Positions 14,476 through 38,594 of a DNA stretch of 64,000 nucleotides are shown piece after piece. Position 1 is the first letter of the stretch. The number at the start of each line of letters is the position of its first letter. This stretch comes from Ylistrum balloti (taxonomy: Eukaryota). The DNA lies in contig NW_026781894.1 in assembly GCF_031769215.1 (NCBI RefSeq), forward strand, positions 310,001-374,000. Reading direction: 5' to 3'. A program made the position numbers and the translations under genes. Under the pieces are notes generated by a model. That model did not search any database. It was given only the letters and a program-made list of their open reading frames with translations, and was not told where the DNA came from.

Positions 14476-16277
14476 CTGGATTACCATATCGTCTCCAAAC
14501 ACCTATATCAAGAAGTGCAAAATACAAGTCAATGTGTCAAAGGTCTTTAAACAATCACATTTCGTTTTACTGGTAAATGTAAATCTCTAACGTTGTTTTG
14601 TTTTTAATGATTGGTATCGGAAGAATTTCGAAAGAGATTCTCAACCATATTACGACATTTTGGGCCTGGGATTCTTTTCTGTCTATTGGCGTTGCAGTGT
14701 CACTCTTTGCAAATTCCTTGTTAATCTTCTATTTTGTTATAAGACCAGGTCATGTCAATATTATGACAATGCAATGTCACACTCATAGTAACATATATGG
14801 ACATCTTCAGCGATATGGTCTTGTGACGGTGAGACTGAAGTCTATAACAGCAAGATACTATTGACATGTAAATACAATCTTAATTCAAAATCATTAAAAC
14901 AAGTGGGCAAAAATATGAACACAATAAAAAATTGTCCTCAAACTCGTGAATCTGGGTCCATGCCTGAAGAAAATGTTAATACATAATAAATGTCTTTTCA
15001 TAAAAATGAACAAGAGTCGATCAAAAGACCAAGTAAGGTATGTTTTGTCGATCTTTAAAACAAGAGATTTCACTCAAACGTTTGATAAATATACAGCTTT
15101 TAAATATTGAAATCTCAATTCTGGGTGAAAAAGAGAATATGATGGATTTCCCAATTAGTGATGATTCCCTCAATTGTTTCTTGCTGGAAACGTTACTTTA
15201 TAAATATATATACCTGAAAAAACATTGTTGCTTTACAATTTAGTCTATCCAATGAAAAGTAAGATAAATTCTTCTTTGTTATACAGTCATTAACATATGT
15301 CAGACGGTGGGATATACAGTTTAGTGGAATTAATGTAAGACAAATACACAGTGAATAGCACTGATAATTAATGGTATATCTATCGTAAAAATTGCATGAA
15401 AATAAGATATCTATCGTTCCATAAATGTTTATTGTATGCATTAAATGAAATAATAATGGCCATAACTAAACTATTTTCTAGTAAGTTAGTCTCTTAAACG
15501 ACAAATCCAAACATATAGATGTGCCATTATAAATATGAATTCATGTTCTTATACTTCCTTTAAATTCCATGAGTTTTTATTGCAAACTTGGAGATTTTGA
15601 TGATGGGTGAATAACATAAAAGCAAAATTGCCGCCTTGCGGTAAGTTCTCATTACGAAAAAGACATTGATTATCATATATTGACCCGAGAATATTCTAAA
15701 GCATACTTAGAATGGTCCTATTCATAAATCAACCGGAGTCAGACTGTTAGCTAACTATGCTGATCTTTAATGATCTGACATACACAGCAGCACAAAATTC
15801 TATTCCTAAAATGTCTCACAGACCACGCACATCTTTACCACATGCATGGCACTATAATCTGAATAACGACACAGCTTATAAATAAACTAGAAACAAGTTT
15901 CCTGTTATGCTGGCAGGTGTAACATGTTTTCATATCAGCTTTCGTTCTTGCACCTCAACTTGAAATGTCCACATCCAATACTTAATGAAACACGCTAGAA
16001 TATAGCATTGCTATAGTATTTTTGCTTTGTGCTTCATATTGCAGAAAGTTTCTTCTCTTCATTGTAACTTTAAGGTTCATTAGTGTCGGTATAACAAACG
16101 GCAGTCGTGATAGGGGGTTTTACATGATCATATGTTGTATCAGATTTTTTTTAAAGATGGCTTCACATCCTTTAAGCGCCTATTTAATTCTGGACTCCAC
16201 CATATTTTTATTGAGAAACAAAGCCACAAGTCATTCAATACTTCCATGTTGCTAATCCAATCGTTTTGTCAGGATTA

Positions 16278-19200
16278 TCAATCGATAGGAACACAGACCA
16301 GTGTATAAGGACGTGGACAGCGATAGGCTCCGTCTTCCGCTTCCGTCGATGGCACTCTGTTAACTTCCGGGTTCAGTTTGAATTTTCTTAATATACTGGC
16401 AAATAATACGTACAATGTTTTGTCAGCTTGTGCAGAGAAAGGGCAACATCTGGATCCTGAAAGAAGAACAAAATATCATAACGAAAAAGACCATCCCATC
16501 TCGTATTTCGGAACATTTTTACAAGCTGGTAATGTCAATAGAATATGATATATCATAACACAACCATTAGAAGATTTAAATGTGACGTTTCAATGACTAC
16601 AAGATTAGCTTCATCAAACAAAGGGTCCATTGTGAAGAGTACCAGCATTGACCCACGTAGTGTGCGAGAAGGTAAGGAACTGACCATTAATGCGTAGCCG
16701 AATTGACTACAGTACATTTTTACTATCGTGTGTATTGTTTGGTCTATAATCTGTTTACCATCTCGTCGCACTATTTTTGACCTTAATCGTACATAGGATT
16801 ATAGTACAGCCTAAAACGTTGGTCATGTGACACTTAAATCTTCTACTGGTTGTGTTATAAGAACTTGTATTATATTACATCTCATTTTGATTTCTGCTCC
16901 GTAAAACAGAATACGCAATACGCTCTTGTCTTCATACATAAAAAATCAGCAGACGGTTTACACACAATATTCTTGTTTTGGTTAGTTGTTTACTGACTGC
17001 TTGTAACGGAGATCTAATGTTAGAATGCTGTACGACAAAAAATTATAAAGAGATTGTCGAATATTCGGCTGAAAGATCAAAACCATTTCAAGGTATTGTG
17101 TGACCTTATGGTCGGTTAGTATAACATAAAACATTTAGATGTAGTAGAAATGTCATATTTAACTGGGTATTGAAGAGTTCATGTGAGGTTTATTTTGTAT
17201 TACCAAGGCCATAGGGAAAGAAGTCGTCATGGTTGGTGAGTTGACTGTTAGAATCTAAGAAGTGTTCCGGTCGGAACTCCGTCGGCCGTTTCCAGTAAGA
17301 TGTGTCCATGTGCGACGAATAGAGATGAAATAGAACCATATATCCACTGGGTATTTTGTACCCTCCCAATTCTACGTCCTCGTTAGTGGTGTGAGGAATA
17401 CTGAGGGGTACTGCCAAATACAGATCAATGTTAATCACATAATGATATATCTGCTGTACAGTATACACTTCTACTTGTCTGTTAACACATTTTTCATTTT
17501 TTCTGTTTTATTGACACATCTGAACTGGTCTGTATGATACAGCAATATGATATTTTTATTACTTATACAAGTAAACGTCAATGCAATCTGACAAAATCTT
17601 ATACCACGTCAACACAAAATCTAAAACGAGATCTGATAGGTCCAATAAAAACGCATGGATATACATGATGACGTATCAAATCTAGGAAAATATGTAGGTA
17701 ATGAGCTGAGACAGCATCAAGTCTTTAATAGTACTGGAAACAAGACAGAGCAATTTTTGTAATGGAAAATATTACTATCTTTCTGTATTCGAAGAAACAT
17801 TTGTTCTGAAATGCCTTGAAGTAGCGTTATTGTTTCCGGAGCATTTGTAAAAACCTACAGACGTTGCTGATGCGTTGAACCTCTCGAAGTGTCGCCATGA
17901 CGAATGGAACCTGGTCGCGATCCTCCCATGTCAGATCTCGGGTTTTAGACACCTGTTTATAAACATCAAAATGAAAACATGACAGGACCTAACATTTCAC
18001 AATTGACATAATAATTCATGTTAATTTGTATGGCGTTCGATATTAGAAAACATATCAAGGAAATCCATAAAACTGTACCAAAAGGACATGCAGTGATTAA
18101 CACCACTAGGTTATATGTATATTGAAGAGTGGGTGATATTGCATCACCCAATTGGTTCTTCTTTTACTCTTCAAGAAATTCGAACGAAAGGAAATCATTA
18201 TAGATTGTTAAAACAAATGAAAAATAGAAAAAAATAGTTTATTGAAATGCAAGAATACTAACTATACATCTGTATATGTAATATGTAGCTATGGTAGATT
18301 ATATCACCTGATGAACAATCGGAAGTTAACAAAGAAATAGGTGAAATAACATTGAAAGGCAATAACACTTGGCATTGTCTGTTTGTATTATTTTATTATG
18401 TACAAACATATAGGATTTCGTTATATCTTTTGGGATCCAACTAGTATTACATCAAAGGGTGTCCGTTGTATGTTTTCGATAGAAATAGAAAGGTTGGTAT
18501 CATTTTGTGTAAAACATGTTTATATCTGAATACAGATGCCTAAGTGAATATAAAGATAGTATCTGTTCATGTCTCAAATACCTTGTGAATATCATGCCTG
18601 CACATCGTCTGTACTTCTGGATAGCGAACCATGTATAAAAGTGACCAAAGAAGAGTGTTAACCGTCGGCTCCAGCCCTCCAACCATCACGTCCACCAATG
18701 TCTGTATTAGGGTGTCGTCTAGTGATGAAAGTTGAAGAATGATGAACATGTAATTTTTTTTGTGATTGAAATTAAACTACATTTAACATCTAACGACTTT
18801 AGTCAAAGGAAATTAGAATAGGAATCTTCAAACAAGGCTTTATGACTTTCATAATTTTATGTGAATATACATTTCTTTTCAGTCTGAATTGTCAGCTTTT
18901 TAACAGTCTAAAACGTTTGTTCATAGCACAAGCCACGTAGTGTTATTAGGTAGGTATGCGATAAATTGTTGACTTTAGTTAACATTTTTATGTACCATTC
19001 TGTCGTATGTCCTTTTTTCAGATATTTTTTCCAGGCTATGGATGGTGTCAAACTTTACAATTACATCGGATTTTGTTTCTTAGAATTAGAATTGGTATCG
19101 ATTACAGCATCAAAGTTAGTGAGTCCTTCATAGAAAAGAAACACAGATCGAAGCCTCGTTTTACAGTTTTAATAACAATTCATTGGTAAAGAGTTTTGAA

Positions 19201-22200
19201 AATCCCCCGATAACCCAACGGGATTGAAAGTAAATAAAAGGACCTGTACCAGATAGGATAGGGTCTCCTTTGCGATCAAGATTCGATTTTAGCCAGAAAT
19301 CAACGAAATGACGTAGGTCCGTAGCCATGAAAGTATCCTTCTCCTTGACCAACGCTTTAGCCAGGAACGATTTCAGCTGGACATTGGAGGCCGTCATAGA
19401 GTGTAACTGGCGAAAAGCAAATACATTAACGCGTATATTTATTAATGAATCAAGGCCGAACTCCACATTTAAAAAAACTAATGATATTGTGAAAGTGAAA
19501 TTTGATTTGAAATATTGATTATCAAACATGATTTCACAGTAAGAAAAAAAAAAAAGGCTTTGCATTCACATATCATCTGATGAATGATTTATGAAACTAC
19601 GATTATTGAGGACAAAACAGGTACTTTGTGCCCTCAGAATGTGGTTTGGCACTGAAATTCAATGATTATGGTTAAACTTACGTTAGAGGAGGACATAAAC
19701 AGGCTGGCCAGTGGAAGATAATTGTGGGGTAGCTTTAAAGGCGAAATGTTGCATACAGACTTCAAAGAATTGAGTAACCCCCTTCCTTCCTCCTTATCAG
19801 TGTCAAATCTCAAAAGAAAAGAAAAACATTTAAATATACAAAGCAAACCCCCTTTATATAATCCCATGCAATACTATTCTTGTTTCTACAGTATCGTTGT
19901 GTTTGTTTATTTCGAGCCCAATGCTCCGAAACAATGAAACAACCCACTACTAAGTCTAACATGAGCAGAAACAGAATGACATGTATGATAGCAGTCTCTG
20001 GCAAGGCATTATCACTTCATGGAGTTTAAAAAATAACTATTTTCGTGCGAACAATGAACAGAGACAGATAGACAGATAAAGCGTAGATAACTATTAGCGA
20101 ATTCCACTGAACAAGAAGGCAACACACAACGGCATTCTAATATGCTGCATGATAATTACGGAATCCAAGGTTTAGGACGGACTTCAACTGCAGCTGCCGG
20201 GTGACCCGTTACTTGAGGCTTCTACTGTAGCATTTATATTGATTTTAATAATCATTATCATAACTGACATCGAATTATTCACGGATATGTTAAACTTCAA
20301 ACTACTGTAAACTTTTTACATTTTGTTAGGCAGATTTTTTATCACACAGTTATTCAACGTATTCGGGAAATGCGACAAAATACATGTATAGACATGTACG
20401 TAAAGGGAGGTTAGTTTGTTTGTCAAGACAACAAAAGGAAAAAAAATCAAATCTGAATTGTTTTCATAGACGGAAGCCATTTTATAAAGAGGTAGACTCA
20501 ATGAGAATGGACAGTTGCCATACAGACCTGTATAGACAGGTGACCTGGAAGGCGAATACATAACTTATAAAACAGTTTAAGACGGGGATGGTGAATATAG
20601 ACAGTTAGATGCGTTAACATTACCTATAGGCCGATGAACTCAAAGACACTACGGTTAGATATCTCAGGTACATACTTTACCAAAAGATGTTAAGAACAAA
20701 CGTATCATAAAAAAGAAAGACAAAAATCGTCTCGTGGATTCTTCTTATACAAATGGCCACTATGGACAAATGGGCTCGTAGAAACTTCATGTACAAATGG
20801 AAAAATAATGTTTTGCAGGCAGTTGATATGCCAATTGACACTTTAGATAGGATGTCTCTTTATACATTAGTGGACACTCCTGATAGATAACCTCGTTCAC
20901 ATTTCTTATATAATCGAACATTTTGGATAGATGGTTTAGTAGACATTTCCTATACAAATGAACGCATAAGACAGGTCGTCTTGTAAATAAATCTTATTCA
21001 AATGGACACTTTTGACATCTCGTAGACACTAAAACAAACTGAGACTTCAGAACGCTGGTCTCATAGAGAGAAATCGATACTTTAATAAGATTATCTCGTA
21101 GACATTTCATTAACAATTGGAAATTTTAGCCATTGCTTTCGTTCACGCTTCATATAAAGAAGGACACTGGCGGATGGTCTTGTAGACACATACAAATGTA
21201 TCATTTAAACATATTGTCTCGTAGATACGCCTTTAGACAGATGATCTCAGAGACACATACAAATGTACCATTTAAACAAATGGTCTCGTAGATACGCCTT
21301 TAGAAAGATGATCTCGGAGACACATAAAAATGTACCATTTAAACAATGGTCTCGAAGATACGCCTTTAGACAGATGATCTCGGAGACATACAAATGTACC
21401 ATTTAAACAAATGGTCTCGTAGTTACGCCTTTAGACAGATGATCTCGGAGACACATACAAATGTACCATTTAAACAATGGTCTCGTAGTTACGCCTTTAG
21501 ACAGATGATCTCGGAGACACATACAAATGTACCATTTAAACAATGGTCTCGAAGATACGCCTGTAGACAGATGCTCTCGGAGACACATACAAATATACTC
21601 GTTTAAGCAATGGTCTCGTAGTTACGCCTTTAGACAGATGCTCTCGGAGACACATACAAATATACTCGTTTAAGCAATGGTCTCGTAGTTACGCCTTTAG
21701 ACAGATGATCTCGGAGACACAATCAAATGTACCATTTAAACAATGGTCTCGAAGATACGCCTGTAGACAGATGCTCTCGGAGACACATACAAATGTACCA
21801 TTTAAACAAATGGTCTCGTAGTTACGCCTTTAGACAGATGGTATTATAGACATTTCGAGTAAAAATGAACACTTAAGTAGATGGTCTCATCGTCACTCCA
21901 TTAGACAAATAAACATTTTATACATAATTTCGAACACAAACACTTGGACACATGAAATAAACGCAGATGACCTCATAGCTATTTATAAACAAATGGACAA
22001 ATATTTCGTAGACTCTTCATATGTAAATAGACACTTTAATCAGACGGTGTCGTAGATACTTCTTTGAGGCAGATAACGTCACAGAATTTTTTATAGACAT
22101 GCATACCGTAGACAAAATTATTCGTCGACACTTTATATACAAGTTAACATTTTAAACAGAGTATCTCGCGGAAACAAATAAGCACTTCATATACGGCATT

Positions 22201-25200
22201 TAAGGTCACTTTTAGACAGATGGTGTCTTGTTAATCGGTGTCCTCTTGGACATTTGACGGCATTACAGACACTTTATAAAAATGTCTTATGTTGTAAATG
22301 TGATCTAAACTGATGTGATAGGCACTCTATGTATATGTATTATACACATCTTAACACACATTCAAATAGATATACATGTTTGATGGAGAATACACATATG
22401 TACCTGGTCTGTTCTCTATCCTGATAGTCGGAGTGTCTTGTGTGGACGGTTATTAGTAATACAAGACGATGTAACATGTTCTGTTTGAAGCATGCAAGAT
22501 AACAGCATCTTCCAAATAAATGTCACAGCTATTATTATCACGTGCTTGTTACCTGGTTAGTGTTAACCCCTTTGTTTACCATGACAACGCATTTTTTTAA
22601 AAAAAGATATGCTGGGCTTTATGTGATAATCTGTTTGCTTTCCTCACAAGCTTCAAACACCACCACATATTCTATCTAAGTAATTCGAATATCCTACAGC
22701 TGATCAACAATAACAAGTTACCAACATGTCAACATAATCATAATCCAAACCCAAACAGCTTCGTTGGCAAAAATATGAACAAAAGAAATGTCAACCAGGG
22801 GACTCATGAAAAAGGACAAGGTGTTCCAGAAAAGAAAGCGTCTTTTGCTTCAACGCTGACACCCGCCATTAAAACCCTTGTCAGTCAAAGTAAGTTATGT
22901 CACGTTTACAAATAAGAGCAAACTATTCAAAAACGGGATCATTAGGGAAACTGAGGAGCATCAAACACAGAATCATTTCGCGCATAGAAATGGATATATT
23001 CAGAACTGTTATTAAAACCATTGGNNNNNNNNNNNNNNNNNNNNNNNNNNNNNNNNNNNNNNNNNNNNNNNNNNNNNNNNNNNNNNNNNNNNNNNNNNNN
23101 NNNNNNNNNNNNNNNNNNNNNNNNNNNNNNNNNNNNNNNNNNNNNNNNNNNNNNNNNNNNNNNNNNNNNNNNNNNNNNNNNNNNNNNNNNNNATCTACTG
23201 TACTTGTGTGTATGCATTTTTGTCTTAATTTTTCATTACGGTGCGTTGCCAGGTAACATCTTTTCAAATAACCATGTTACTTGTATGTTTCACTCCATAT
23301 GTCTGAGGGATTCTATAGCACAGATCTTTAGAACTTGTATGTTTTGATAAATACATATCATTGATTACGCTCATAGTATAGATGATAACATGCCGTCTTA
23401 CCTTTGACCTAACAGAAATCCACACAAGATGTTGAGGACAGCTTTGGTGAGGATAGCCCTAGGGTTGAGTGGAATGCATTTCTCCGCGTATAATTCAGTG
23501 GCAAGGTTCTTGGCCTCTTCATGAATAACATCCTCAAAGCCACCTCGTCCAAGCCACGGGTGTCTCACAGACATATCGATAAGATTGTGAACTTTGGTCC
23601 ATTGGTCACCGTCACTCCACAACAATCCTAAACGTTAACCAGGAATAACAAAACATGTTATCGTCACTCCATTGCAACCCTAAACGTTAACCAAAAATAT
23701 TAACATGATCAGCCTAATTAACATTATTGTCAACTTCATTCCATAGCAACCTTACTGGTGAAATAATACAATGTTGTTTACTGGTAAAGTAATACAGAGT
23801 TGTTTACTTGTGAAGTAATACAATGTTTTTTTTCTGTTGAAATAATACAATGTTGTTTATTGGTGAAGTAATACAATGTTGTTTACTGTTGAAGTAAAGC
23901 AATGGTGTTTGCTGTTGAAGTGGTACAATTTTGTTTACTGGTGAAGTAATACAATGTTGTTTACTTGTGAAGTAATACAAAGTTGTTTGTTGTTGAAGTA
24001 AAGCAATGGTGTTTACTTGTGAAGTAATACAATGTTGTTTACTGGTGAAGTAATACAATGTTGTTTATTGGTGAAGTAATACAATGTTGTTTACTGTTGA
24101 AGTGATACAATGTTGTTTAGTGTTGAAGTAAAGCAATGGTGTTTGATGTTGAAGTGGTACAATTTTGTTTGCTGGTGAAGTAATACAATGTTGTTTACTT
24201 GTGAAGTAATACAATGTTGTTTACTTGTGAAGTAATACAATGTTGTTTACTGTTGAAGTGATACAAAGCTGTTTACTGATGACATAATGGAATATAGTTT
24301 ACTGGTGACGAAATACAACGTTGTTTACTGGTGAAGTAATACAAAGTTGTTTGTTGTTGAAGTGGTACAATTTTGTTTGCTGGTGAAGTAATACAATGTT
24401 GTTTACTGGTGAAGTAATACAATGTTTTTTACTGTTGAAATAATACAATGTTGTTTACTTGTGAAGTAATACAATGTTGTTTACTGTTGAAGTGATACAA
24501 TGCTGTTTACTGATGACATAATGAAATATAGTTTACTGGTGACGAAATACAACGTTGTTTACTGGTGAAGTAATACAAAGTTGTTTGTTATTGAAGTGGT
24601 ACAATTTTGTTTGCTGGTGAAGTAATACAATGTTGTTTACTTGTGAAGTAATACAATGTTGTTTACTTGTGAAGTAATACAATGTTGTTTACTGTTGAAG
24701 TGATACAATGCTGTTTACTGATGACATAATGAAATATAGTTTACTGGTGACGAAATACAACGTTATTTACTGGTGAAGTAATACAAAGTTGTTTGTTGTT
24801 GAAGTGGTACAATTTTGTTTGCTGGTGAAGTAATACAATGTTGTTTACTGGTGAAGTAATACAATGTTGCTTACTGCTGAAATGATACAAAGTTGTTTTC
24901 TAGTGAAGTAAGACAATGCTGTGTACTTGTTAATTAATATAATACTATATTTTATTATCAATATATAATCATGTTCATCGCTGTTCGTAACAGCTATTAG
25001 ATTTAAACAGTATGATCACCGTTAATCCATAGTAACCTTGTGCCTGTCTTTCTGAAACTTTTGAGATTTTATATCTTACAGAATCTCCATAGAATATAAA
25101 CGTTAAATTCTGTATATATAATTACATATGAAATATCACAAACAATATTGTTCGTTTTGTTGGTGTTGTATCAAAAGGACTGGCACAATAGGTTGTTCCA

Positions 25201-27799
25201 TGTCGGTAGATTTTATGCCTACAAAACTGAATTTTTTCGTTACCGTTGTGTACGTAAACTTTGTAACGGATACCAAAGGGAAACATATGATAATCGTTGA
25301 ATCGATTCCCGCGATGAAATTTCAGACCGCATTTACTATAAATCTATTCAAGCACCAAGGAAGACTAGCATTTTGAAGCAAAATTCCTAGGAGTCGAATC
25401 AATTTTTCTGAATTTAAGAAACGAAACCCACCTGCAATAATGTTACGATCAAATGATTCAAATCTACCCAGGCATTAAGAAGAAATAGCATTTTGCGGCA
25501 AATTGTTGTCTTACTTCCCCTTTTTGAGCCCCGTCCTTAAGTCTCTTGGGTCGAATAAACTTTTTGAGTTGAAGAAATGTTTCACCACTGTCAGTAATAT
25601 TTCAGACCAATAGTATGAAATTCATTCAAGAATTAAGCGAAAGTACCATTTTGAAGCAAACTATAGACTAACTTCCCCATTTTGGGTCCCATCCCCTGGT
25701 CCCTAAGGGTCAAATCAACCATCTAAATCTAAGGAATGATAATCCACCTGCAATAATATTTACTCGCAGTTTGGTTGAAATCTACCCAGGCATTGAGAAG
25801 GAGTAGCGTTTTCAAGCATAACATTGTCTAATTTCTCCTTTTGGGGCCCAACACCCCAGTCCCTAAAGGTCGATTCAAATTCCTAAATGTAGGAAATAAT
25901 TGCCTACCCAATCTAATAACTCAAGCCAAAGCTTGTTGAAATCCACCCCGGCAGAAACGAGGAGTAGGGTTTTAAATATAATTTCAACATCTCCCATTTC
26001 GGGACCACGTCCCTCGACCCCGAGGGATCAAATTAGCATTCTGTATTTAAGAAATAAATCTCACCCAACGATGCATTAGACTAAATTTGGTTGAAATCCA
26101 CAAAGGTATGATAGAGAGAAGTAGGGTTTTAAAAAAAAAAATACACAAGATGCACAACGCACGGCGAATGGTGCACGGTGACGGACGAAGCACAATGGCT
26201 GTAGGTCATCTGACCAGAAGAGTCATGATGACCTAAAGCCACCTTCAGGTCAGATGACCTAAAACCTGTAAGAACTAGTATTAACATCTATGTATTATGT
26301 TTAGGTTTTCAAGAGATAATAACAATTGAACTTGTCTGTTATAAGATAACCCGAGTTCAGTTGTACTTATACCCGATTGCACAAAAACCTTAGATAAATA
26401 CCACAATAACCTCAAATAAATATCACAATAACCTCAAATAAATATAACAATAACCTCAAATAAATATCACAATAACCTCAAATAAATATAACAATAACCT
26501 CAAATAAATATCACAATAACCTCAAATAAATATCACAATAACCTCAAATAAATATCACAATAACCTCAAATAAATACCACAATAACCTCAAATAAATATA
26601 ACAATAACCCCACGTATTATATAATAACTAAAGCGTCTATTAAAAATATAACATTCTCAAATAAATATCACAATTAATAAATAAATACCTCAATATAAAA
26701 TATCACAATCTCCTCAAATAAATATCACAATAACTTCAAATAAATATAACAATAACCTCAAATAAATAAAACAATAACCTCAAATAAATATCACAATAAC
26801 AGAAACTATACTAAATTAGTGGATACATATAACGTTTTCAACATCATCCCGCCACATACTATAAGTAAACAGCATAAACACCTTTATCGTGTAATAACGT
26901 TAAACAGAGGTAATATTAACATCTAAAACTAATTTGCTAAACACCTACACGAAACATTTTCAAGCAAAACTTTACTACTTTACAACATCACTAAACATGG
27001 CAAGTACATAGAAATCAATGCAGTCACCTTATAAAAACTTAATGATACAAACTCAGATAAACCAACTGAAAGTTAAAAAAGGGGGATACGGTCTTTGGCA
27101 ACTAAATGCATAGTAAACCCAAGAACAGGAACTGCAATCCTTGGGATTAGTTTGGAGTCAACCCTGTTTTCATATCGTTCCGTCTCATATATGCATGTGC
27201 ATACGTACGTACATAACTGGTAACCTCGGTTTTCGTACCATATTTGAATACAGTGAAACTGATTCTATTTTATTTTAAAGAGAACTTCGCTATTAAGTCA
27301 GCCAGGCTGTTTTTATATCTAAAGCTTTATCATACAACTTCCTAAAATAAGCAGAATGATCCAATTTTGTCGTGTTGCAATACGAAACAAAGTAGCAATA
27401 TAATGCAAAATTCTTACCTCTGTGACTAGAACATCTCCTTATCCCAAGCAGCCAATTAGGTCGGTATTGAAACTTGTCCCCCTTCTGTACCAGTGCTTCT
27501 CGAACCAAATCGTGTCCCAGAACAACAACAGCGTTAGAGGTTCCGAGCGTCAAACGGAAAACATTTCCGTACTGTTTACGGAGTAGGAATAGTTTTCGGT
27601 AGAGAAAATTTCCATTGCCGACAATATGGAGGTTCCCTATGATCGGTATTGAGAAAGGACCTGGCGGTAGATGTCGCCTCGATATTATCAGGTATACAAG
27701 GGAGCCAATAAACAGCAAAAGGATTCCGATGTTGAAGGGTGTGAAAATGTCGTGTAAATCAGTACCACTTACTGCATCTCTCAAAAACTTACGAGCCAT
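16278..27799 (-). CDS. Microsomal cytochrome P450, clan-2-like, 502 aa, 8 exons: complement(join(16278..16456,17204..17410,17859..17952,18582..18718,19250..19406,19682..19808,23402..23627,27418..27799)); atypical catalytic motifs
   Basis: N-terminal transmembrane anchor and PPGPFSIPIIGNL hinge, FQYRP, GQRFD, LVDVMVGGLEPT (I-helix), EVQR (K-helix ExxR), SIPH, FRPEHF (PERF) and FPYGLGSRCCPF (heme Cys loop). All seven introns are GT-AG with matching phases; 1509 nt with no internal stop. Confidence 0.93.
16721..16824 (+). repeat. Short dispersed repeat in P450 intron 7 (partner at 37876-37970 in regucalcin intron 4)
   Basis: Shared tactatc-tgtgtatt-ttggtctataatctgttt-ccatctcg and gattatagtacagcc-aaaa-gttggtc. 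Confidence 0.75.
21176..21842. repeat. Minisatellite, 65-67-bp unit, about 10 copies, in P450 intron 2, with degenerate related flanks (about 20740-22220)
   Basis: ggtctcg recurs at 21282, 21348, 21413, 21479, 21545, 21612, 21679, 21745 and 21812. Confidence 0.95.
23025..23192. other. Assembly gap (168 N) in P450 intron 2
   Basis: Run of N. Confidence 1.
23753..24930. repeat. Minisatellite, 26-bp unit (tgaagtaatacaatgttgtttactgg), about 45 copies, with higher-order structure, in P450 intron 1
   Basis: Head-to-tail copies. The variant monomer gacataat recurs at 24281, 24515 and 24723. Confidence 0.95.
25335..26264 (+). mobile_element. Non-autonomous Helentron/HINE (pearl/CvA-like) element: degenerate core repeats of about 158 bp, a gacg-type microsatellite remnant and a 3' palindrome
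   Basis: A ttgaaatc(t/c)ac...agtag(c/g)-ttt motif recurs near 25458, 25618, 25775, 25935 and 26092. gacggacg occurs near 26180. A perfect 14-bp inverted repeat taggtcatctgacc (26202-26215) / ggtcagatgaccta (26248-26261) is followed by aaa. Confidence 0.65.
26395..26797. repeat. Minisatellite, 22-bp unit (cacaataacctcaaataaatat), about 18 copies with a degenerate middle
   Basis: Head-to-tail copies. Confidence 0.93.
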
Positions 27800-28841
27800 G
27801 ATATACGTTGTTTAAAGTACAGCTTTTAAATGTTATATTTATCTTCCGGCATAATTCTAACTCGCAAGGTCCCCACGAAAGTGATTCTTTTCGATGGCTA
27901 GTTCTTAACAAAGTTGTAATTCTGAGAGCGGGCTACTGGAGGACTGTTTACTGTTACTGAAACCAATGACGTAATAAGCGTCTCTAACGATATCCGGAAC
28001 CAGGTGCCAATATTACACAGACCATGCCGCCAGCTCATTAAGCATCGGACAAAGATCGTCCTGTATACTGTTGGCCAAAAATAACCGCAATGTATATAAA
28101 GAGTTGATAATGAAATAACTTTTGTGGGGTTTTTTTTAGTTACATTAAGATTGTAACAGAGCTCTCAGGATACCGTAACCCTAATGTGTTAACAGAAAGT
28201 CTCGGTGTGAAGGTGCTGATTTAAACAATGTTTAGTCTCATAAAAGAACATGCACATGACGAGTATTAATAATATTTAAATCTACAAGAATTTCTAACTT
28301 GTATGTTATGAGTGATATTATATCGATGTTGTGGATAGAGGCAAGACGCACTGAAAGAAATTAATACTTAGCGCACATGCATTAAAATCCTACACTTCAT
28401 AAATATGCTGCTTCATATCTGTGTAACATATGGTTTTTATTTACATACACTTGTGTTAAGTATACTGATTACCAGCCATGTATTTTGTAAAACACGATGC
28501 TTTGTTTACTGTCGTCTTTGACCAGACCATTTTACTTATTTTAGGAAAATGAAAAAAAAAAAAAAAAAATGGCCTCTACATCCGGTTTTGTCTATCATTT
28601 TTCAAAAGTAAGACACTTGTTCAAGAGCCCTTTCTCTGACAGAGTCTTCGTTCAAACATGTTTCATGGTCATCAGACAAGAATGGTAATTATCATTTAAA
28701 AAAAAATCATGACTGGTTAATCCTATCTATCGTTTTTCATTTACTAAGGTTTGTCGTGAAAAAGAAAATAATTTGAGCATTTAAAAAAAGAATGTACATT
28801 AAGTGTAAATATAGAATCTATAGAAAGAAAATGGGATCTTG

Positions 28842-29033
28842 TGTATGGTACACACAGGATCAATACTGTTTGTGAAACACGTTAGTGAAGGTAATGCTTC
28901 CGCCAGGATTCGAACTCAAGACCTCTTGCTTACTAGTCCGACGATCAAAGACGATCGAGATAACAAGAAGTTCTTTCTAGCAGAGCAGTATTTCTCCAGT
29001 AAATAACTCGTCCTCCAGTTTCCCTGTGTTACA
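28842..29033 (-). mobile_element. About 190-bp element with TGTA...TACA ends, containing the 3' half of a tRNA-Thr(AGT)-like sequence (solo-LTR, MITE or SINE-like)
   Basis: Minus strand ggactAGTaagcaagaggtcttgagttcgaatcctggcggaagc (28895-28941) has an anticodon loop and B-box pattern, but its stems do not pair. Ends tgtatggtacacacagg and ccctgtgttaca form an imperfect inverted pair. Confidence 0.45.
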
Positions 29034-29148
29034 GCAATGCTTTTGAAAGTTTCGCAAAGTATTAACCTGAAACCCTACATGGGCGCTGCACAGCTTCCGC
29101 TAGAATAAGAACCCGGGACTTTCATTCTCGATACTCCAAGGTTTACGA

Positions 29149-29318
29149 ACACTTTCGCTCTCTGCAGCCCCTGGAACCTGTCATGGCAAAATTGAAGGCA
29201 CAAGCAGAATAATTTGATTGGTTCCAAGAGAAAAAGAAAAAAAAAAAACCTGACCAATCACAGGCTGGACCTTCAATTTTGCAATGACAAGTGCCAGTGG
29301 TGCAGAGAACGAAAGTGT
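29149..29318. mobile_element. Foldback/MITE-like imperfect palindrome (arms of about 65-70 bp around an A-rich loop)
   Basis: Left arm acactttcgctctctgcagcccctggaacctgtcatggcaaaattgaagg aligns with the reverse complement of the right arm (acactttcgttctctgcaccactggcacttgtcattgcaaaattgaagg), plus a tgattggt/accaatca pair. Confidence 0.8.
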
Positions 29319-31993
29319 GAGATATATTAACCGAATATTAAATGAAACAGAAACGAAGGTAAGGTTATAATGATCGCAAAAACATAGATATTTCGCAAAC
29401 ATTTGTAAAAACAGCAATGGAATAGAGGGAGATGAAATCTAAATTATTTACTCCACATAGAGGTGTCACCATAGAAACAATTGGAATTTAAGCCAATCAG
29501 CGTTCTGGTATAGATAATAAATGGTTAAATGACCTTGCGGTCGACAAGGTTTGAACAGATATGATTCTCACCTTCATGGATCTAGATATATTTTCATAAT
29601 CTTTCATACAATAGTTAAATAAAAACTAATTCAAGATTCTTCACTTTAATCTAGTTACCGTTATATATGGAAAACTATCATAAGGGATAAAGAGTTGCGA
29701 ATATCGCGCTACATTTGAAGGATAATATGTAATGTTGAAATAGTTTTGTTTAACTTAAAATAACAATACAAACTCGTTTTAAAATTAATTGAATTCTTTC
29801 TCACAGATCGTTTCTTTAATTCTTCTCAACAAGTATCTGGTAAAAAAGATAAAAAATTAAAACTGGCTAAAAAAACGTTATAATATTCTTGTACTTTTTT
29901 TGTATTTTGTGATTGATGTACACAATTGTTTGGTACACATAAAATAATTTGTCTTTTATACTCCTTATCCTCTGATTTACATTCAATATCTTAACAATGT
30001 GCTTTATATTGTAAAACTTGAGATTTAAATTCTGAATCTCGTATTTTATGCTGAAAAATATGAGTAAATTCGAAGGTTTTATACGCTTTTGTAAAGCATG
30101 TATTTTCCAACCGTGGCATTTACCCGAGAGTGGATAACGTCTTTCAAGATGAAAGCAATAGCAACAACATTGAAATTAGATTCAATGATCACAAGAAAAT
30201 TGTTTATTTTTATTTCTGATATTGAGTTAAGTTATCTCTACCTTAGGCCACTAAGAGTAATAACGAGATATAGGAAACAGCTGGATGATGCAGTTTAATT
30301 CATTATTTGGTTCTACAATATCTAACACTGAATTGTCAAAAAGTGTTATTCACTTGTGTGCATATTATTTTAATGATTTCAATATTACAGAATATTTGAA
30401 ATTTCAAGCAGTTTCAAGAGGACAAAAATTTGATAAACGATTATAAATACGAATTGTCTCCCTTTAAGCGTTGGACATTACATTGCATATTCTTTTTCCT
30501 TCAACTCGGCCTATTTATTTTTAAATATTTATGAAACTTGAGTCAGACAGCAATATGATAACTGATATTCTATATCAGGAAACTGGAATTAGTGACAACA
30601 TTATCTTTGTGGCAAAGATATAATAAATCATATTTGAAAATGTCACACTGAACTTTTGCTAGCAAGGGCTAAATGTACTATACTGCACTTGTTCGTGACG
30701 AGAGGAGCGAAATAATTACGATAAAATTTCAACAGACGCATAGAAGCATCTATCTTCATTTAGAATGGCACGTAAAATTAAGATAAAATTTATTTAAACT
30801 GTTTTGCTTGGACAAATTTAAATAAAAATCTTGTTTTCTTGCGTACGATACTCCTGATGGTCTGAGATCTATTAGGTGTGGTGCCGTTGGAAGCGAGATC
30901 TTAATTAAGGACATCGTATTTTTTTCTACTCCGTATCGATTTGGAGTATCCGGATAAAACAAGATCAACAACATATGACGGAATAATTGTAATTCAACAC
31001 AAGTTATAAGTTTATTTATTTATTTTTTAATTTTGGATAAATAAAAATAAAACGACGCTTAATTGAACTCGTACTCTTTAATAAGGTATTGCTGAGCTTT
31101 ACAGTATTAAAATATTCAATCCATGAACTCCATTAAACTTCTATTTTTTACATAGGTGTCTTACATTTAATAGTAGTGTTCTGTTTTGCGATCTCTCCTT
31201 TTGCAAGCTGCTCTTATTGACAGACGCCGAGAAGCACCCAAATCTGCATGTATCTGTTTGGATACGTGCATATGGCCGACGAATATCAATACCACGATAA
31301 GTATTAATTATAATCAAGGAATTTTAAAACGCGACAACCATATTACAGTTACTATTTATAGTGTAACCTAAAAACGACATTGCCTCCCCTTTTGATATTG
31401 TAACATATAATATCTTGTATTCCACCATATATGACGTAATCGAGGCCTTTTTCAATAGCACAGTCACAATGGTAAAAAAATCCACATGTGTCGGCTTATT
31501 GTCAAAGCGGATTACAGTACAAAAAAGGTCTATAGATAATAAATAGGCAAGTAAGGCTTGGTTTCTATGTCATGCCCTACAAATCTTCAACTCTACCGCG
31601 CCATTGGTAAGCTAGTTACAGCAGCTGCAATTAACAACGTAAATTACGATTTTGTTGTCACAGTTCTACAATATATCGTGTCATACAGCGACACAACCTC
31701 ATTGGCAAGCTAGCCACATATAACTAAACAAGGTTAGGACTACTTGATGTTTAAGTCATTGGTACACACGAGGAGAAGTTTTCAACTACATAACAGGTCT
31801 TTTCACACAACGCTTCTTGTTTTCATGTGATGGATTCCATCATATGAAGGATGAACTTCTCTGAGAGGTAAAACTCCATTATTATACTTTTTGTGACGGT
31901 AATCTTTTGAAAGGTTTGATTTTACAAAATTGATAAAAATCCAAAACAAATGTTGTGTAAAGAGAAATGAAAAAAAGTTTATAGTAGAAAAAC

Positions 31994-32183
31994 TACGGAG
32001 CCCGTTAACTGACATGCTCCATACTTATTTTATTTCGTTTTTTCGAAATATTATTTCGTTTTTTCGAAATAATAATTCGTTTAATATTTCGAAAAAACGA
32101 AATAATATTTCGAAAAAACGAATTATTATTTCGAAAAAACGAAATAAAATAAGTATGGAGCATGTCAGTTAACGGGCTCCGTA
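31994..32183. mobile_element. 190-bp near-perfect palindromic MITE with outer TA dinucleotides and internal 21-bp repeats
   Basis: The first 57 bp (tacggagcccgttaactgacatgctccatacttattttatttcgttttttcgaaata) are the exact reverse complement of the last 57 bp. The interior consists of ttatttcgttttttcgaaata units in both orientations. Confidence 0.92.
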
Positions 32184-33029
32184 AAAAAACAATATGTTGC
32201 CTCACGACCTTTCTTCAGTAAAGGTGTCAGAATATGTTTTACGGGAAGTTATTCATTATCTGACATTTGTTCTTATTTTTTCCTGAATAACAGACATTCT
32301 GTTATTGCCATGGCAATTAAATAAAAAAAAGAGATAAATTGTCATCTTATATAAGAAGGTAAGAGGTAAAATCCTTTTTTCGACCATCTCCTAGTATTAA
32401 ACATTAAATGTTCGGATAGAAAAATTTTCAAGGATACTTTTCATGATGAAAAAAGGAGGGGGTCACATCATTTGTTGAATCCTATAAGTTAATAAGGAAC
32501 ATCAAAATTATTAAAAACAAATAGAATCGGGGTAGTTAGTAAGTATGTCTGATGGTTTCGTTGCTGTTAACCTTGTTGTTGTTTGAGAGCACGATATTAC
32601 TTACATAGCGCTTGTCGTCGATGGAGAAGACGCATACCATTCCAGAACATCTGGTCTTATTCTCAGTGGCTTTTTTTTATTGTTAAGCGTGCCGTGTAAA
32701 TGTTTTTCCATAAATTGCTATCGTTTCAGCTATTTCAAGTTTTTTTTCTTCTGTTAATTGTAACTTTCAAACGATACGCCATTGCTTCTCCAGTACATAG
32801 ATGACACGACAAATTTGTTAAAGCAATGGTCTCTTTAAGTTTTGGTGCTGGTTTTAGGAACTGTCAATCAATCATTAGTCTGAGACATATAGCGGTAATG
32901 ATTATTATTATATAAGGTGACAAGTTATTTCTGATAACTTTTGAACTTTACCTAAAACTTTATCTACTTCACACAAATTCAAAAACAGGTTAATCCGACT
33001 TAAATCAATTACCGCAGCAGAAAGTTCTG

Positions 33030-33067
33030 ATTGGCCAGGTGAACAATGCAGATCAGGATTATAAAAG
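33030..33067 (+). promoter_or_regulatory. Candidate CCAAT (reverse, ATTGG 33030-33034) plus TATA (TATAAAAG 33060-33067) promoter, possibly for a non-coding first exon of regucalcin
   Basis: Motif match only. The regucalcin ATG lies 13 nt after an acceptor-like cgtttcag (35581-35588), implying an upstream UTR exon. Confidence 0.3.
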
Positions 33068-34489
33068 ACCAGTTTAAACTAAGGTACACGACGTACGTTC
33101 AATAGAACTAAAACTAATAAACGTTGAACTCATATATTGAAACTTTTTTTGTACAATAGTCAGTGTTTTGAGTGGTTAGATCTATTTATAGAACACGATT
33201 GACAAGTGTCACTTGTTCCTTATGCTTAGCTATTTCCGCAAGGTGTGTACGTGTACGGTAGCAATCCTACTAAATGGATGATGGTGATAATGCCGTGTCA
33301 GACGTCATAATTCGATGCCTGATCTTGCCGAAGGAATATCCTTTGATGGTAGCACACCTAAGACACGTGATTTGAACTTGTTATTAAGAAAACGAAGAAG
33401 TGTCAACTTGAATCATATCATCACGACTTACATATTAATCCTACGTTTCTCCGACAAACAGCCACAGCAGTTTCGTATGCTTGACGTCCGAGATGCAAGA
33501 AACTGTTGAAAAAGTCTTATGCTAGAATCACACCATTGCCTTGGCACGCTATAATATTCTTTTCTATCTATCACCAAGATTCATCTCTCTTTATCTTTTC
33601 CTCTCTAATGCACTATTATCTCCCTGATACACCTTTCCACTGTTTACTTAACCTTGACCTTGTGTAGTGAGTATTGATTTTGATCAGGGTTTATACGCTA
33701 TGCAGGTGATCTGTCTGTAATTTGGCACAGGGTTTCAATCGGTAGTTTTTATAACATAACTCATGGAGAACCGACTCCTAAAAATCAGATTTCTAATGCA
33801 TACCATTCAATTTACAAAGCTATTGTATACCTACTTTTAAAACAAAGGTATTATACCTTTTTCTTAACGTGCTTACATTTACAGTTTAACAACATATATC
33901 TTTCTCATATATTGTTATTACTGTTCATATTAGACACGGACGTAACAACAAGCACCGCCCCTCCGAAAATGAATTGACTTTATTTCATTTGAATACTTAA
34001 ACTGTATGAAATAAAAATAAACAAGAATACACTGAAAATATCATAAATGAATGAAATATATGTGTTTTACTGAAACACACTTAGATGATCACGTTTCCTC
34101 ATCTGAATTAACTATACCAGTCTTTATGGACTCTTATTGTCAGATTTGATGAACGTTTGTGATATTTTGGTGCCTTGACAACACGACAACGCGAAAACGC
34201 AAAAAATCTTACGCGCCAATACAACAGAGCGGCAATCAGCAAAAGTACCCCTCCAACCAACATACCTATTTGTCGCAATGGTGCGTACTTGTCGCGTCGT
34301 CGGTGTATGTCACATTATGGCGTTGTTGTCCTGTTGCTTTGTCACGTCGCCTTGGCACCAACGCAACAAAGCGAAATGACCGCAAGCAGCCACCATACTA
34401 TTCTAATTTGTTAGATCGAACAAATGAACTATGTTTAAATAAATAAATAAAAAAACAAAACAAAACAAAATAAATGAAATGGAAGCTCG

Positions 34490-34660
34490 AAAAGGGTCGT
34501 CCCTTGAAGAAACCAGAATATCCAGGGAAAGCCGATGTGTTCGAGCAGGTGACCCCATACTTTTTCACGTCCGTTCAAAGTATCGAACCTCAGACGCCTA
34601 ATTTAAAAGCGAGTGCATTTCAACTGACCAACCGACTATCCAACTCACCTGCAAGGCCTT
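34490..34660 (-). mobile_element. Decayed tRNA-derived SINE
   Basis: atcgaacctcagacg..aaagcgagtgc..actgaccaacc aligns with the copy at 39437-39500. gaaaccagaatatccagggaaagcc resembles the central SINE segment common in molluscs. Confidence 0.6.
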
Positions 34661-35601
34661 AGACACCGTTATTATCAGTATATACTAGTAATGGTACTCA
34701 ACAGGTTGTGTAGATGAAATTATTGTTTGTCAGTTACGCAATGCAAGGCCATATCCAGCTTCAATTACGTGTTTCATGTTACTACTGATGCTATGTAAAG
34801 AAAAATGAAATAAGAGATCATGGAAATGATAAAGAGGTACTGATGTGATGTGTTGTCATCTTCGTTTATTTAATTATAATACTAAATACGTCTATACATC
34901 GATCACCAGAATATCGTCATTAGCCTTATGAACCTTATATATCTTTATAACAATCGAGCGTCATTAGTCCAATGTACCAATAAACGGTAGTATTGATGAA
35001 ATCTAACTAGGCTGTTTGGCTAGTAATTATCGGGCATAATATTAAAACAATTGGACCATTTGTCTCCCTTTTCTTGATGTTGCTTTACAATGCTATTTCA
35101 GTTATCAAAGTACTTTAAATCTGGATACTTTGCCTGTGGGAACAGTCCTTGACCTTATGAGACTCAGAAACTATATACTTCAGCAACGTCCCGTTCAACA
35201 TATCTACGCTGCCACATTATCAAACATCTAATACAGCGCTTTATGCATGGCATGCATACATACAGGAACCGATGACACTGATAACTGTTTACAGGGTCGC
35301 TATTTACATTTGTCTGTCGATACGATATGTTAGTGTTGTAAACGTCGGGTAAGTGTTAGCTTTATTATGCAGGCTGGAGAGGACGAATTTTTGGCACATT
35401 GCTTTGTGATAGAAAGTATCTTAAATATTGGCTTTCATTTTATGTGTGGTTTATGAAAAGAAAACTCATTTAAGATCTATATGCATGGTGTCAGTACAGG
35501 CCCTCGTTGCTGTTTAATTTACATATTTTGACTCGCTTATTTTGTCATCTCTGTCATGCAAGAGTCATTCTGAAATGTTCCGTTTCAGACAAGATATTGG
35601 A

Positions 35602-38594
<2,993 letters not shown>

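Follow-up and report, generated by a model that had tools for sequence, protein, structure and literature searches.

A selectively maintained clan-2 cytochrome P450 of the scallop Ylistrum balloti with substitutions at catalytic and haem-contact positions

We analysed a stretch of 64,000 nucleotides of the scallop Ylistrum balloti (NCBI RefSeq assembly GCF_031769215.1, contig NW_026781894.1, positions 310,001 to 374,000; hereafter the window, with positions counted from its first letter). It contains one cytochrome P450 gene, on the minus strand between 27799 and 16278, with 8 exons, a coding sequence (CDS) of 1509 nt and 502 codons without an internal stop. The predicted protein retains the elements that define the P450 fold and hold the haem, i.e. 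the membrane anchor, the PPGP hinge, ExxR, PEHF, Gly444, Arg446 and Cys448. Its predicted O2-activation and proximal-face residues are replaced: Thr315Pro, Arg141His/Arg142Asn, Phe441Tyr, Gly450Phe and an Asp at Cys+7. This suggests that it is probably not an ordinary oxygen-activating P450. We put at about even the chances that this is a real, transcribed and selected scallop gene encoding a haem-thiolate enzyme of non-canonical chemistry that depends less on reductase.

We read each motif in the DNA and in the translated model. The anchor (amino acids 22-39, FNIGILLLFIGSLVYLII), the PPGP hinge (45-48), the K-helix EVQR (367-370) and the meander motif FRPEHF (420-425) are all kept, and so is the Gly-x-Arg-x-Cys core of the haem loop, in register, with its central Gly444, Arg446 and Cys448. 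The C-helix, encoded in exon 2, reads WTKVH (137-141), and a gapless alignment with residues 95-164 of CYP2C9 places His141-Asn142 on Arg124-Arg125 of that enzyme. The I-helix, in exon 5, reads GGLEPT (311-316), and alignment to solved P450s places Pro315 on the Thr of GGTETT in CYP21A2. Hence, the acid-alcohol pair of the (A/G)Gx(D/E)T motif is absent, with the acid Glu314 and Thr316 both kept. This pair marks the canonical monooxygenase mechanism rather than the P450 fold, and some known P450 families lack it. The haem loop spans the junction of exons 7 and 8 and reads PYGLG/SRCCPF (440-450; slashes mark splice junctions here and below). It has the canonical length, and differs from FxxGxRxCxG by Tyr441 in place of Phe (Cys-7) and Phe450 in place of Gly (Cys+2); an Asp is found at Cys+7. 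An earlier note, made from the letters of this DNA, had listed the anchor, PPGP, EVQR, PEHF and the axial Cys as kept, and WTKVH, GGLEP (with Pro at the conserved Thr) and YGLGSRCCPF as altered. We recovered all of these.

To place the substitutions in context, we used the columns of the family alignment with a conservation of 80% or more among 35 relatives. The scallop protein keeps 43 of these 53 columns, and all 12 of those in exon 1. The radical misses (R141H, D208K, T315P and G450F) fall mainly at catalytic or haem-contact positions, and the mild ones are F441Y, A311G, E340D, S442G, F459Y and L460V. The 68 distinct haem loops of the retrieved proteins have at Cys+2 a Gly (65 loops), an Ala (2) or a Ser (1), and never a Phe; at Cys-7 they have Phe in 66 cases and Tyr in 2. 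The residue following the I-helix acid is Thr in 28 of the retrieved proteins, Ser in 2 and Asn in 1. A Pro at Cys+1 is common (13 of the 68 loops) and the residue preceding the Cys is variable, so that the extra Cys and the Pro of the scallop loop are unremarkable. The earlier note had regarded both the Phe at Cys+2 and the adjacent extra Cys as anomalies; the former stands and the latter does not. Judging from the alignments, the Cys+2 Phe and the I-helix Pro are the real departures, and the C-helix His is a lesser one.

The gene model was checked boundary by boundary. All seven introns are GT-AG, and the CDS has a GC content of 46% compared with about 34% for the window. Exon 1 (27418-27799) encodes amino acids 1-127 plus 1 nt, including the start codon, the anchor, the hinge and the beta-1 region, and ends at the donor G/gtaaga. 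Exon 2 (23402-23627, amino acids 128-202) has the C-helix WTKVH at 23587-23601 and ends in phase 2. Exon 3 (19682-19808, amino acids 203-245) provides the third base of the split codon (AG/A, Arg203); its splice sites are ttttgag/A and AAC/gtaagt, and its intron position is as in the homologue CHS0354_042521 of Potamilus streckersoni (498 aa, hereafter P0033). There is an assembly gap of N at 23025-23192, inside intron 2, between the donor of exon 2 (23401) and the acceptor of exon 3 (19809). The public record has the same gap. No coding sequence appears to be missing there, because the phases of exons 2 and 3 fit and the protein alignment to P0033, whose intron sits at the same residue, continues unbroken across the junction. 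Exon 4 (19250-19406, amino acids 246-297) is followed by exon 5 (18582-18718, amino acids 298-343), where GGLEPT lies at 18663-18680, and by exon 6 (17859-17952, amino acids 344-374), which carries the K-helix EVQR. Exon 7 (17204-17410, amino acids 375-443) encodes the PH motif, FRPEHF and the first half of the haem loop, FFPYGL(G). Exon 8 (16278-16456, amino acids 444-502 plus the TGA stop; SRCCPFSAQADK) encodes the candidate ligand Cys448, Phe450, the L-helix and the C-terminus.

The junction of exons 6 and 7 had to be placed by homology. We set it at T/gtaggt ... ggcag/TA, in phase 1, which gives EVQRISNVLPLSIPH at the canonical length. In the Potamilus (L003) and Dreissena (L004) homologues, this intron is also in phase 1 and lies five codons past the Arg of ExxR. 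These intron positions rule out the alternative junction TGTAG/gt ... ctcag/T, which would give a protein of 500 aa. With this junction and the boundaries read above, the stop-free, 8-exon, 502-aa P450 described in the earlier note is confirmed. Searches of the whole window with the model and with its relatives (tblastn) revealed no paralogue of the P450, and a search of the window with the relatives revealed no alternative last exon for it.

RefSeq splits the gene into a 176-aa model and a separate 357-aa model. The first, XP_060071332.1 ('cytochrome P450 2C30-like [Ylistrum balloti]'), is encoded at the same locus as the window (GCA_031769215.1, JAUZWB010000123.1) and is 100% identical over exon 1. 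It joins an upstream hydrophobic exon (around 34263, minus strand), exon 1 and a terminal exon located in intron 1 (25514-25585, minus strand, VVKHFFNSKSLFDPRDLRTGLKKGK). Either the gene was mis-split or this model is a genuine truncated isoform. The 357-aa model starts at Met146 in exon 2 and runs to the stop, and its length is that of the 502-aa model counted from Met146. An exact look-up of the exon open reading frames in the protein collection gave no match. The practical consequence is that the full-length protein is kept out of protein databases, since RefSeq divides the gene in two.

We compared positions 16250-19850 of the window with contigs from four further runs, which come from three studies. 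This region covers exons 3-8 (the WTKVH codons, at 23587-23601, lie outside it). The genomic contigs of runs X1, X2 and X4 (two studies) span it entirely and differ at about 1% of the intron sites. The codons of the I-helix and of the haem loop are unchanged in these contigs and in the spliced contigs of run X6, i.e. the same letters are found in all four runs. The earlier note had considered that the substitutions could be assembly errors, a concern that these independent genomic and spliced contigs remove for the I-helix and the haem loop.

Run X6 (19 Mb of contigs) also informs on splicing. Its contigs cover exons 4-8 and leave the intron bins empty, except at a multi-copy repeat (about 16490-16975). 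One of its contigs (record 29) joins 19250 to 18718 and 18582 to 17952, thereby linking the 3' end of exon 4 to exon 5 and exon 5 to exon 6 at the modelled GT-AG sites once shared bases are taken into account. Another (record 25) joins 17204 to 16456 and creates GLG/SRCCPF across exons 7 and 8 without changing a letter. Since these contigs join exons exactly at the modelled sites, and the introns have no depth, we infer that the locus is spliced and transcribed. A processed retrocopy is a remote alternative source of these joins, but the contigs listed in the genomic runs include no exon-joined form. None of the runs recorded as RNA holds the gene, and the expression is read from the spliced X6 contigs only.

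We then used the haplotype found in X1, X2 and X4 to assess selection on exons 3-8, bearing in mind that this is one pair of haplotypes compared with contig-level data. Over the 2287 intron sites within 16842-19850 we counted 26 differences (1.14%), and the introns there have 12 insertions or deletions (indels). The exons contain 203 synonymous and 695 non-synonymous sites. At the intron rate one expects 2.3 synonymous and 7.9 non-synonymous differences; we found 2 and 0, respectively, and no indel. The two synonymous differences are at Ser430 (AGT to AGC, 17244, exon 7) and at Ser243 (TCC to TCT, 19688, exon 3). The Poisson probability of observing no non-synonymous difference is 3.7e-4. Run X6 adds one non-synonymous variant, Thr319Ile (18655, exon 5), and the probability becomes 0.003 when this variant is counted. 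The gene is thus under purifying selection. This argues clearly against a dying paralog, because the synonymous differences match the intron rate and the non-synonymous ones are lacking. The suggestion of the earlier note that the pattern reflects selection rather than decay is therefore supported by the haplotypes, as it is by the intact frame of 502 codons in a genome of 34% GC, by the splicing in X6 and by the 43 of 53 conserved columns.

The assignment to the P450 family was made exon by exon. The gathering cut-off of Pfam PF00067 (22.8 bits) is exceeded by exons 1 (47.6 bits), 2 (24.7), 5 (36.2) and 7 (65.5), each taken alone; exon 6 is below it (16.8 bits). Exon 8 alone matches no P450 in Pfam or in PDB, and the exon 8 of four bivalve relatives scores 16-44 bits on Pfam. 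The best PDB matches of the exons are CYP2R1, CYP2C9, CYP21 and CYP17, with exon 7 matching CYP2R1 at 1.4e-12. The K-helix ExxR and the PExF of the meander are present, at columns that the family alignment shows to be conserved. The anchor and PPGP are those of clan 2, and the protein nests among sequences annotated as CYP2J-, 2U- and 2K-like. By sequence, it is a clan-2 cytochrome P450 anchored in the endoplasmic reticulum. Named CYP families are defined by at least 40% amino-acid identity. The protein does not reach this value with any of them: its best full-length match is at 34.9% identity (P0033), and the next ones are at 32-33%. The search for relatives was seeded with exon 1 only, in a library clustered at 50%, and a closer unnamed relative could be missed. 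On these alignments the gene is at new-family distance, with at most 35% identity to anything retrieved.

The best full-length matches are all from bivalves: Potamilus streckersoni (P0033, 34.9%), Dreissena polymorpha (XP_052263806.1, 32.7%) and Ruditapes (XP_060554557.1, 32.1%). In a tree of 36 clan-2 sequences inferred with IQ-TREE, the scallop gene is sister to P0033 (support 100/99), and both are inside a clade of 10 members (support 99/98), of which 6 are named bivalve proteins. The tree thus places the gene in a bivalve-specific P450 lineage. Its end branch (0.98) lies between the median (0.82) and that of its sister (1.17), so the gene is not unusually accelerated. All seven intron positions of P0033 coincide with those of the scallop gene and its exon 7 is 60% identical to the scallop one, even if the overall identity is only 34-35%. 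P0033 has also lost the I-helix Thr, as the Potamilus genome encodes HGFEAS, with Ala at this position. In contrast to the scallop protein, it has a canonical C-helix (WHKFR) and haem loop (FGIGPRSCTG), and Pfam still gives its last exon a score of 29 bits. We also noticed that P0033 reads PYY where PH is expected.

Other members of the clade have departures of their own. The Dreissena '2J6-like' protein, which shares the positions of the introns between exons 6 and 7 and between exons 7 and 8, has AGTEN (Thr to Asn), CLA (Cys+2 Gly to Ala) and no C-helix Trp. The Mizuhopecten yessoensis '2U1-like' protein XP_021346386.1 has WHKLS (Arg to Ser) and CVA (Gly to Ala). However, these two proteins are only 27-33% identical to the scallop one, and neither has all three changes or a bulky residue at Cys+2. 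Relaxed motif conservation seems to be a trait of this bivalve clade, of which the scallop gene would be the extreme. In the data available, the changes in the C-helix and at Cys+2 appear private to it. The I-helix Thr is absent in both sisters (Ala in one, Pro in the other), and parsimony favours neither a single loss nor two separate ones. The earlier note had proposed a mollusc lineage sharing the substitutions. This holds for the I-helix Thr, which the sister also lacks, but not for the C-helix and the haem loop, which are canonical in the sister.

Further searches added little to this list. In the profile search with exon 1, among representatives at 50% identity, only the RefSeq fragment of the gene itself was above 50%. 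Hence, no orthologue above 50% was found in the other annotated scallops with this seed and these representatives, which does not by itself show that there is none. The closest other fragment (141 aa, 46% identity to exon 1) is on a 1.3-kb Logan contig of SRR29726840 (L001), which has the same RRHLPPGPF hinge, the same exon end and no other exon. A word search with P0033 gave nothing closer than 31%, and one with the alignment of the full-length relatives and the scallop exons returned the same relatives. The word search with exon 7 gave no candidate, but only proteins of 51-161 aa were eligible and this blank means little. Synteny with Potamilus or Dreissena was uninformative, as there were no neighbours within 10 kb.

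The vertebrate clan-2 enzymes of solved structure (CYP2R1, CYP2C9, CYP21A2 and CYP17A) share with the scallop protein the fold signature, the anchor with PPGP, ExxR and PExF. They differ from it by WxxxR, (A/G)GxET and CxG, where it has His, Pro and Phe. The acid-alcohol pair of the I-helix supports O2 activation (PMC11842817). In the CYP152 peroxygenases, this pair is replaced by Arg-Pro and there is no Phe seven residues before the Cys (PMC5818669). The scallop protein resembles these enzymes (P450 BSbeta, SPalpha, OleT) by the Pro at the position of the I-helix Thr and by the lack of Phe at Cys-7, and this resemblance is mechanistic only. CYP152 enzymes are soluble and bacterial, and the Arg before their Pro binds the carboxylate of the fatty acid; the scallop protein has Glu314 in its place, is membrane-anchored and groups with metazoan clan 2, and thus is not a CYP152. 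The I-helix alcohol is also missing in the CYP74 allene oxide synthase, CYP8A1, CYP5A1 and P450eryF, and catalysis by CYP74 and CYP8A1 is independent of reductase. These are from other clans and we found no sequence relationship between them and the scallop protein; the haem loop of CYP74 has an insertion, whereas that of the scallop protein is of canonical length. The proteins retrieved included no sequence of CYP307 (insect spook/spookier), another family that the earlier note had named as atypical. Natural P450s without the acid-alcohol pair use peroxide or oxygenated substrates, and a Pro is structurally compatible with the kink of the I-helix. On the side of the redox partners, residues R122, R125, R126, R133 and K433 of CYP2B4 contact cytochrome b5 (PMC4330534). 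The alignment maps these positions to Thr138, His141, Asn142, Arg149 and Ser445, so that only the equivalent of R133 is kept. Among the basic residues of the C-helix, P0033 and the Ruditapes protein retain three or four. In the literature searched, we found these motif changes described for no P450 of a bivalve or scallop, and no paper citing this assembly.

Taken together, these comparisons suggest how the protein might work. The haem would still be bound through Cys448, and the standard cycle of NADPH, P450 reductase and O2, with its Thr-assisted proton relay, would no longer be run. The likeliest alternatives would be the use of an oxygenated substrate or of a peroxide, by rearrangement of a hydroperoxide or endoperoxide or by a peroxygenase-type reaction, or else a substrate-assisted activation of O2. 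The earlier note had suggested an isomerase, a peroxide shunt, substrate-assisted catalysis or a non-catalytic binder, and the present data would fit any of these. The I-helix alcohol may already have been lost in the common ancestor with the Potamilus sister, and the proximal-side changes would have come later, in the line of the scallop gene. A more specific version is that the protein is a reductase-independent peroxygenase, or a hydroperoxide or endoperoxide isomerase, acting on bivalve oxylipins, that it converged with CYP152 (the Pro and the missing Cys-7 Phe) and with CYP74, and that the Cys+2 Phe and the loss of basic docking residues retune the proximal thiolate side. We regard this version as tentative and, as a whole, unlikely.

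Several observations weigh against a haem-thiolate enzyme of non-canonical chemistry. Haem binding is assumed from the sequence, and a normal Cys pocket may not accommodate a residue as bulky as the Phe at Cys+2. The divergence of exon 8, which puts it beyond recognition by Pfam, would also fit a protein that no longer binds haem. Glu314 and Thr316 are kept and a His can hydrogen-bond a haem propionate, so ordinary monooxygenation is still open to this protein, and its anchor and hinge are typical of reductase-dependent microsomal P450s. The proximal side of the sister is canonical, and thus two of the three changes are known from a single gene of a single species. As to the locus itself, RefSeq has two genes here, one of them with the alternative terminal exon at 25514-25585. 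The label of X6, 'DNA?', is a guess and its RNA nature is inferred from splicing, and the junctions of exons 1-2, 2-3, 3-4 and 6-7 are not bridged by the listed contigs.

The closest competitor, which we find credible but clearly less probable, is a reductase-dependent monooxygenase that tolerates the substitutions. Glu314 and Thr316, or an ordered water, would deliver protons, the propionate would be held by His141, and the Cys loop would adapt to the presence of Phe450. The conservation of these two I-helix residues, of ExxR, PEHF, Arg446 and Cys448, and the typical anchor and PPGP fit this idea, as do the canonical proximal side of P0033 and the Dreissena and Mizuhopecten relatives, which are intact despite single motif departures. 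It must however accommodate, all together in one protein, the replacement of Thr by Pro, of Gly by Phe, of Phe by Tyr and of Arg-Arg by His-Asn, with a Cys+2 Phe seen in none of the 68 sampled loops and an exon 8 that, unlike that of the relatives, neither Pfam nor PDB detects. The protein could also be a pseudoenzyme, a non-catalytic P450 fold retained as a binder of some ligand or partner, whether or not it carries haem. This would account for a fold under purifying selection while the haem-pocket residues change radically, for an exon of the Cys pocket and L-helix that Pfam does not recognize, and for the loss of most contacts with redox partners. Yet, Cys448, Arg446, Gly444, ExxR and PEHF would have little reason to be retained if haem were not bound, and we consider this rather improbable.

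Decay and artefact fit the data less well. A paralog in early decay, with recently relaxed constraint, eroding motifs and a frame still open by luck, would explain why several invariant residues are altered and why the Pfam signal of exon 8 is gone. That no close orthologue was found in the other annotated scallops, and that RefSeq has no full-length model, also points this way. It is difficult to reconcile with 0 non-synonymous differences against 7.9 expected, with no indels in exons against 12 in introns, with 502 open codons in AT-rich DNA, with canonical splice sites at conserved positions, with the spliced contigs and with a branch of no excessive length; decay is accordingly quite improbable. 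The odd residues could also come from sequencing errors or wrong exons. There is a gap of N within the locus and the junction of exons 6 and 7 admits the alternative given above. But the gap is intronic, four runs from three studies carry the same I-helix and haem-loop letters, a spliced contig joins exons 7 and 8, and the window has no alternative canonical last exon, which makes an artefact highly improbable. We thus rank a haem-thiolate enzyme with non-canonical chemistry first, followed by the tolerant monooxygenase, the pseudoenzyme, early decay and, last, the artefact.

P450s without the I-helix Thr have repeatedly proved unusual, with examples of peroxygenation, rearrangement of lipid hydroperoxides and substrate-assisted oxidation. 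What is new here is a selectively maintained combination, in an animal P450 of microsomal type, of Pro at the I-helix Thr, His-Asn in place of Arg-Arg, Tyr at Cys-7 and Phe at Cys+2, which we met neither in the sample nor in the literature searched. If haem is bound, the protein illustrates the extent to which the Cys pocket tolerates remodelling, and could lead to a new mollusc enzyme handling oxylipins or peroxides. If haem is not bound, the gene offers a clear example of selection maintaining a P450 pseudoenzyme.

The introns of the gene contain several repeats. Intron 1 has a 26-bp tandem array of about 46 copies (23752-24943, 80% matches), in which there are long minus-strand pseudo-open reading frames, and a 22-bp tandem unit in 19 copies (26380-26800). 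Intron 2 has a 67-bp tandem unit in 10 copies (21173-21840, 91% matches). The repeat of intron 7 (about 16490-16975) is present in very high copy, with a summed contig depth of 23,000-37,000 in the genomic runs, compared with 12-18 in its flanks, and it has many internal and opposite-strand joints. These features probably indicate a short element of mobile or satellite type. Outside the P450, a neighbouring gene on the plus strand (about 35602-38594) encodes a 312-aa product with the Pfam domain SGL (PF08450, SMP-30/gluconolactonase/LRE-like region).

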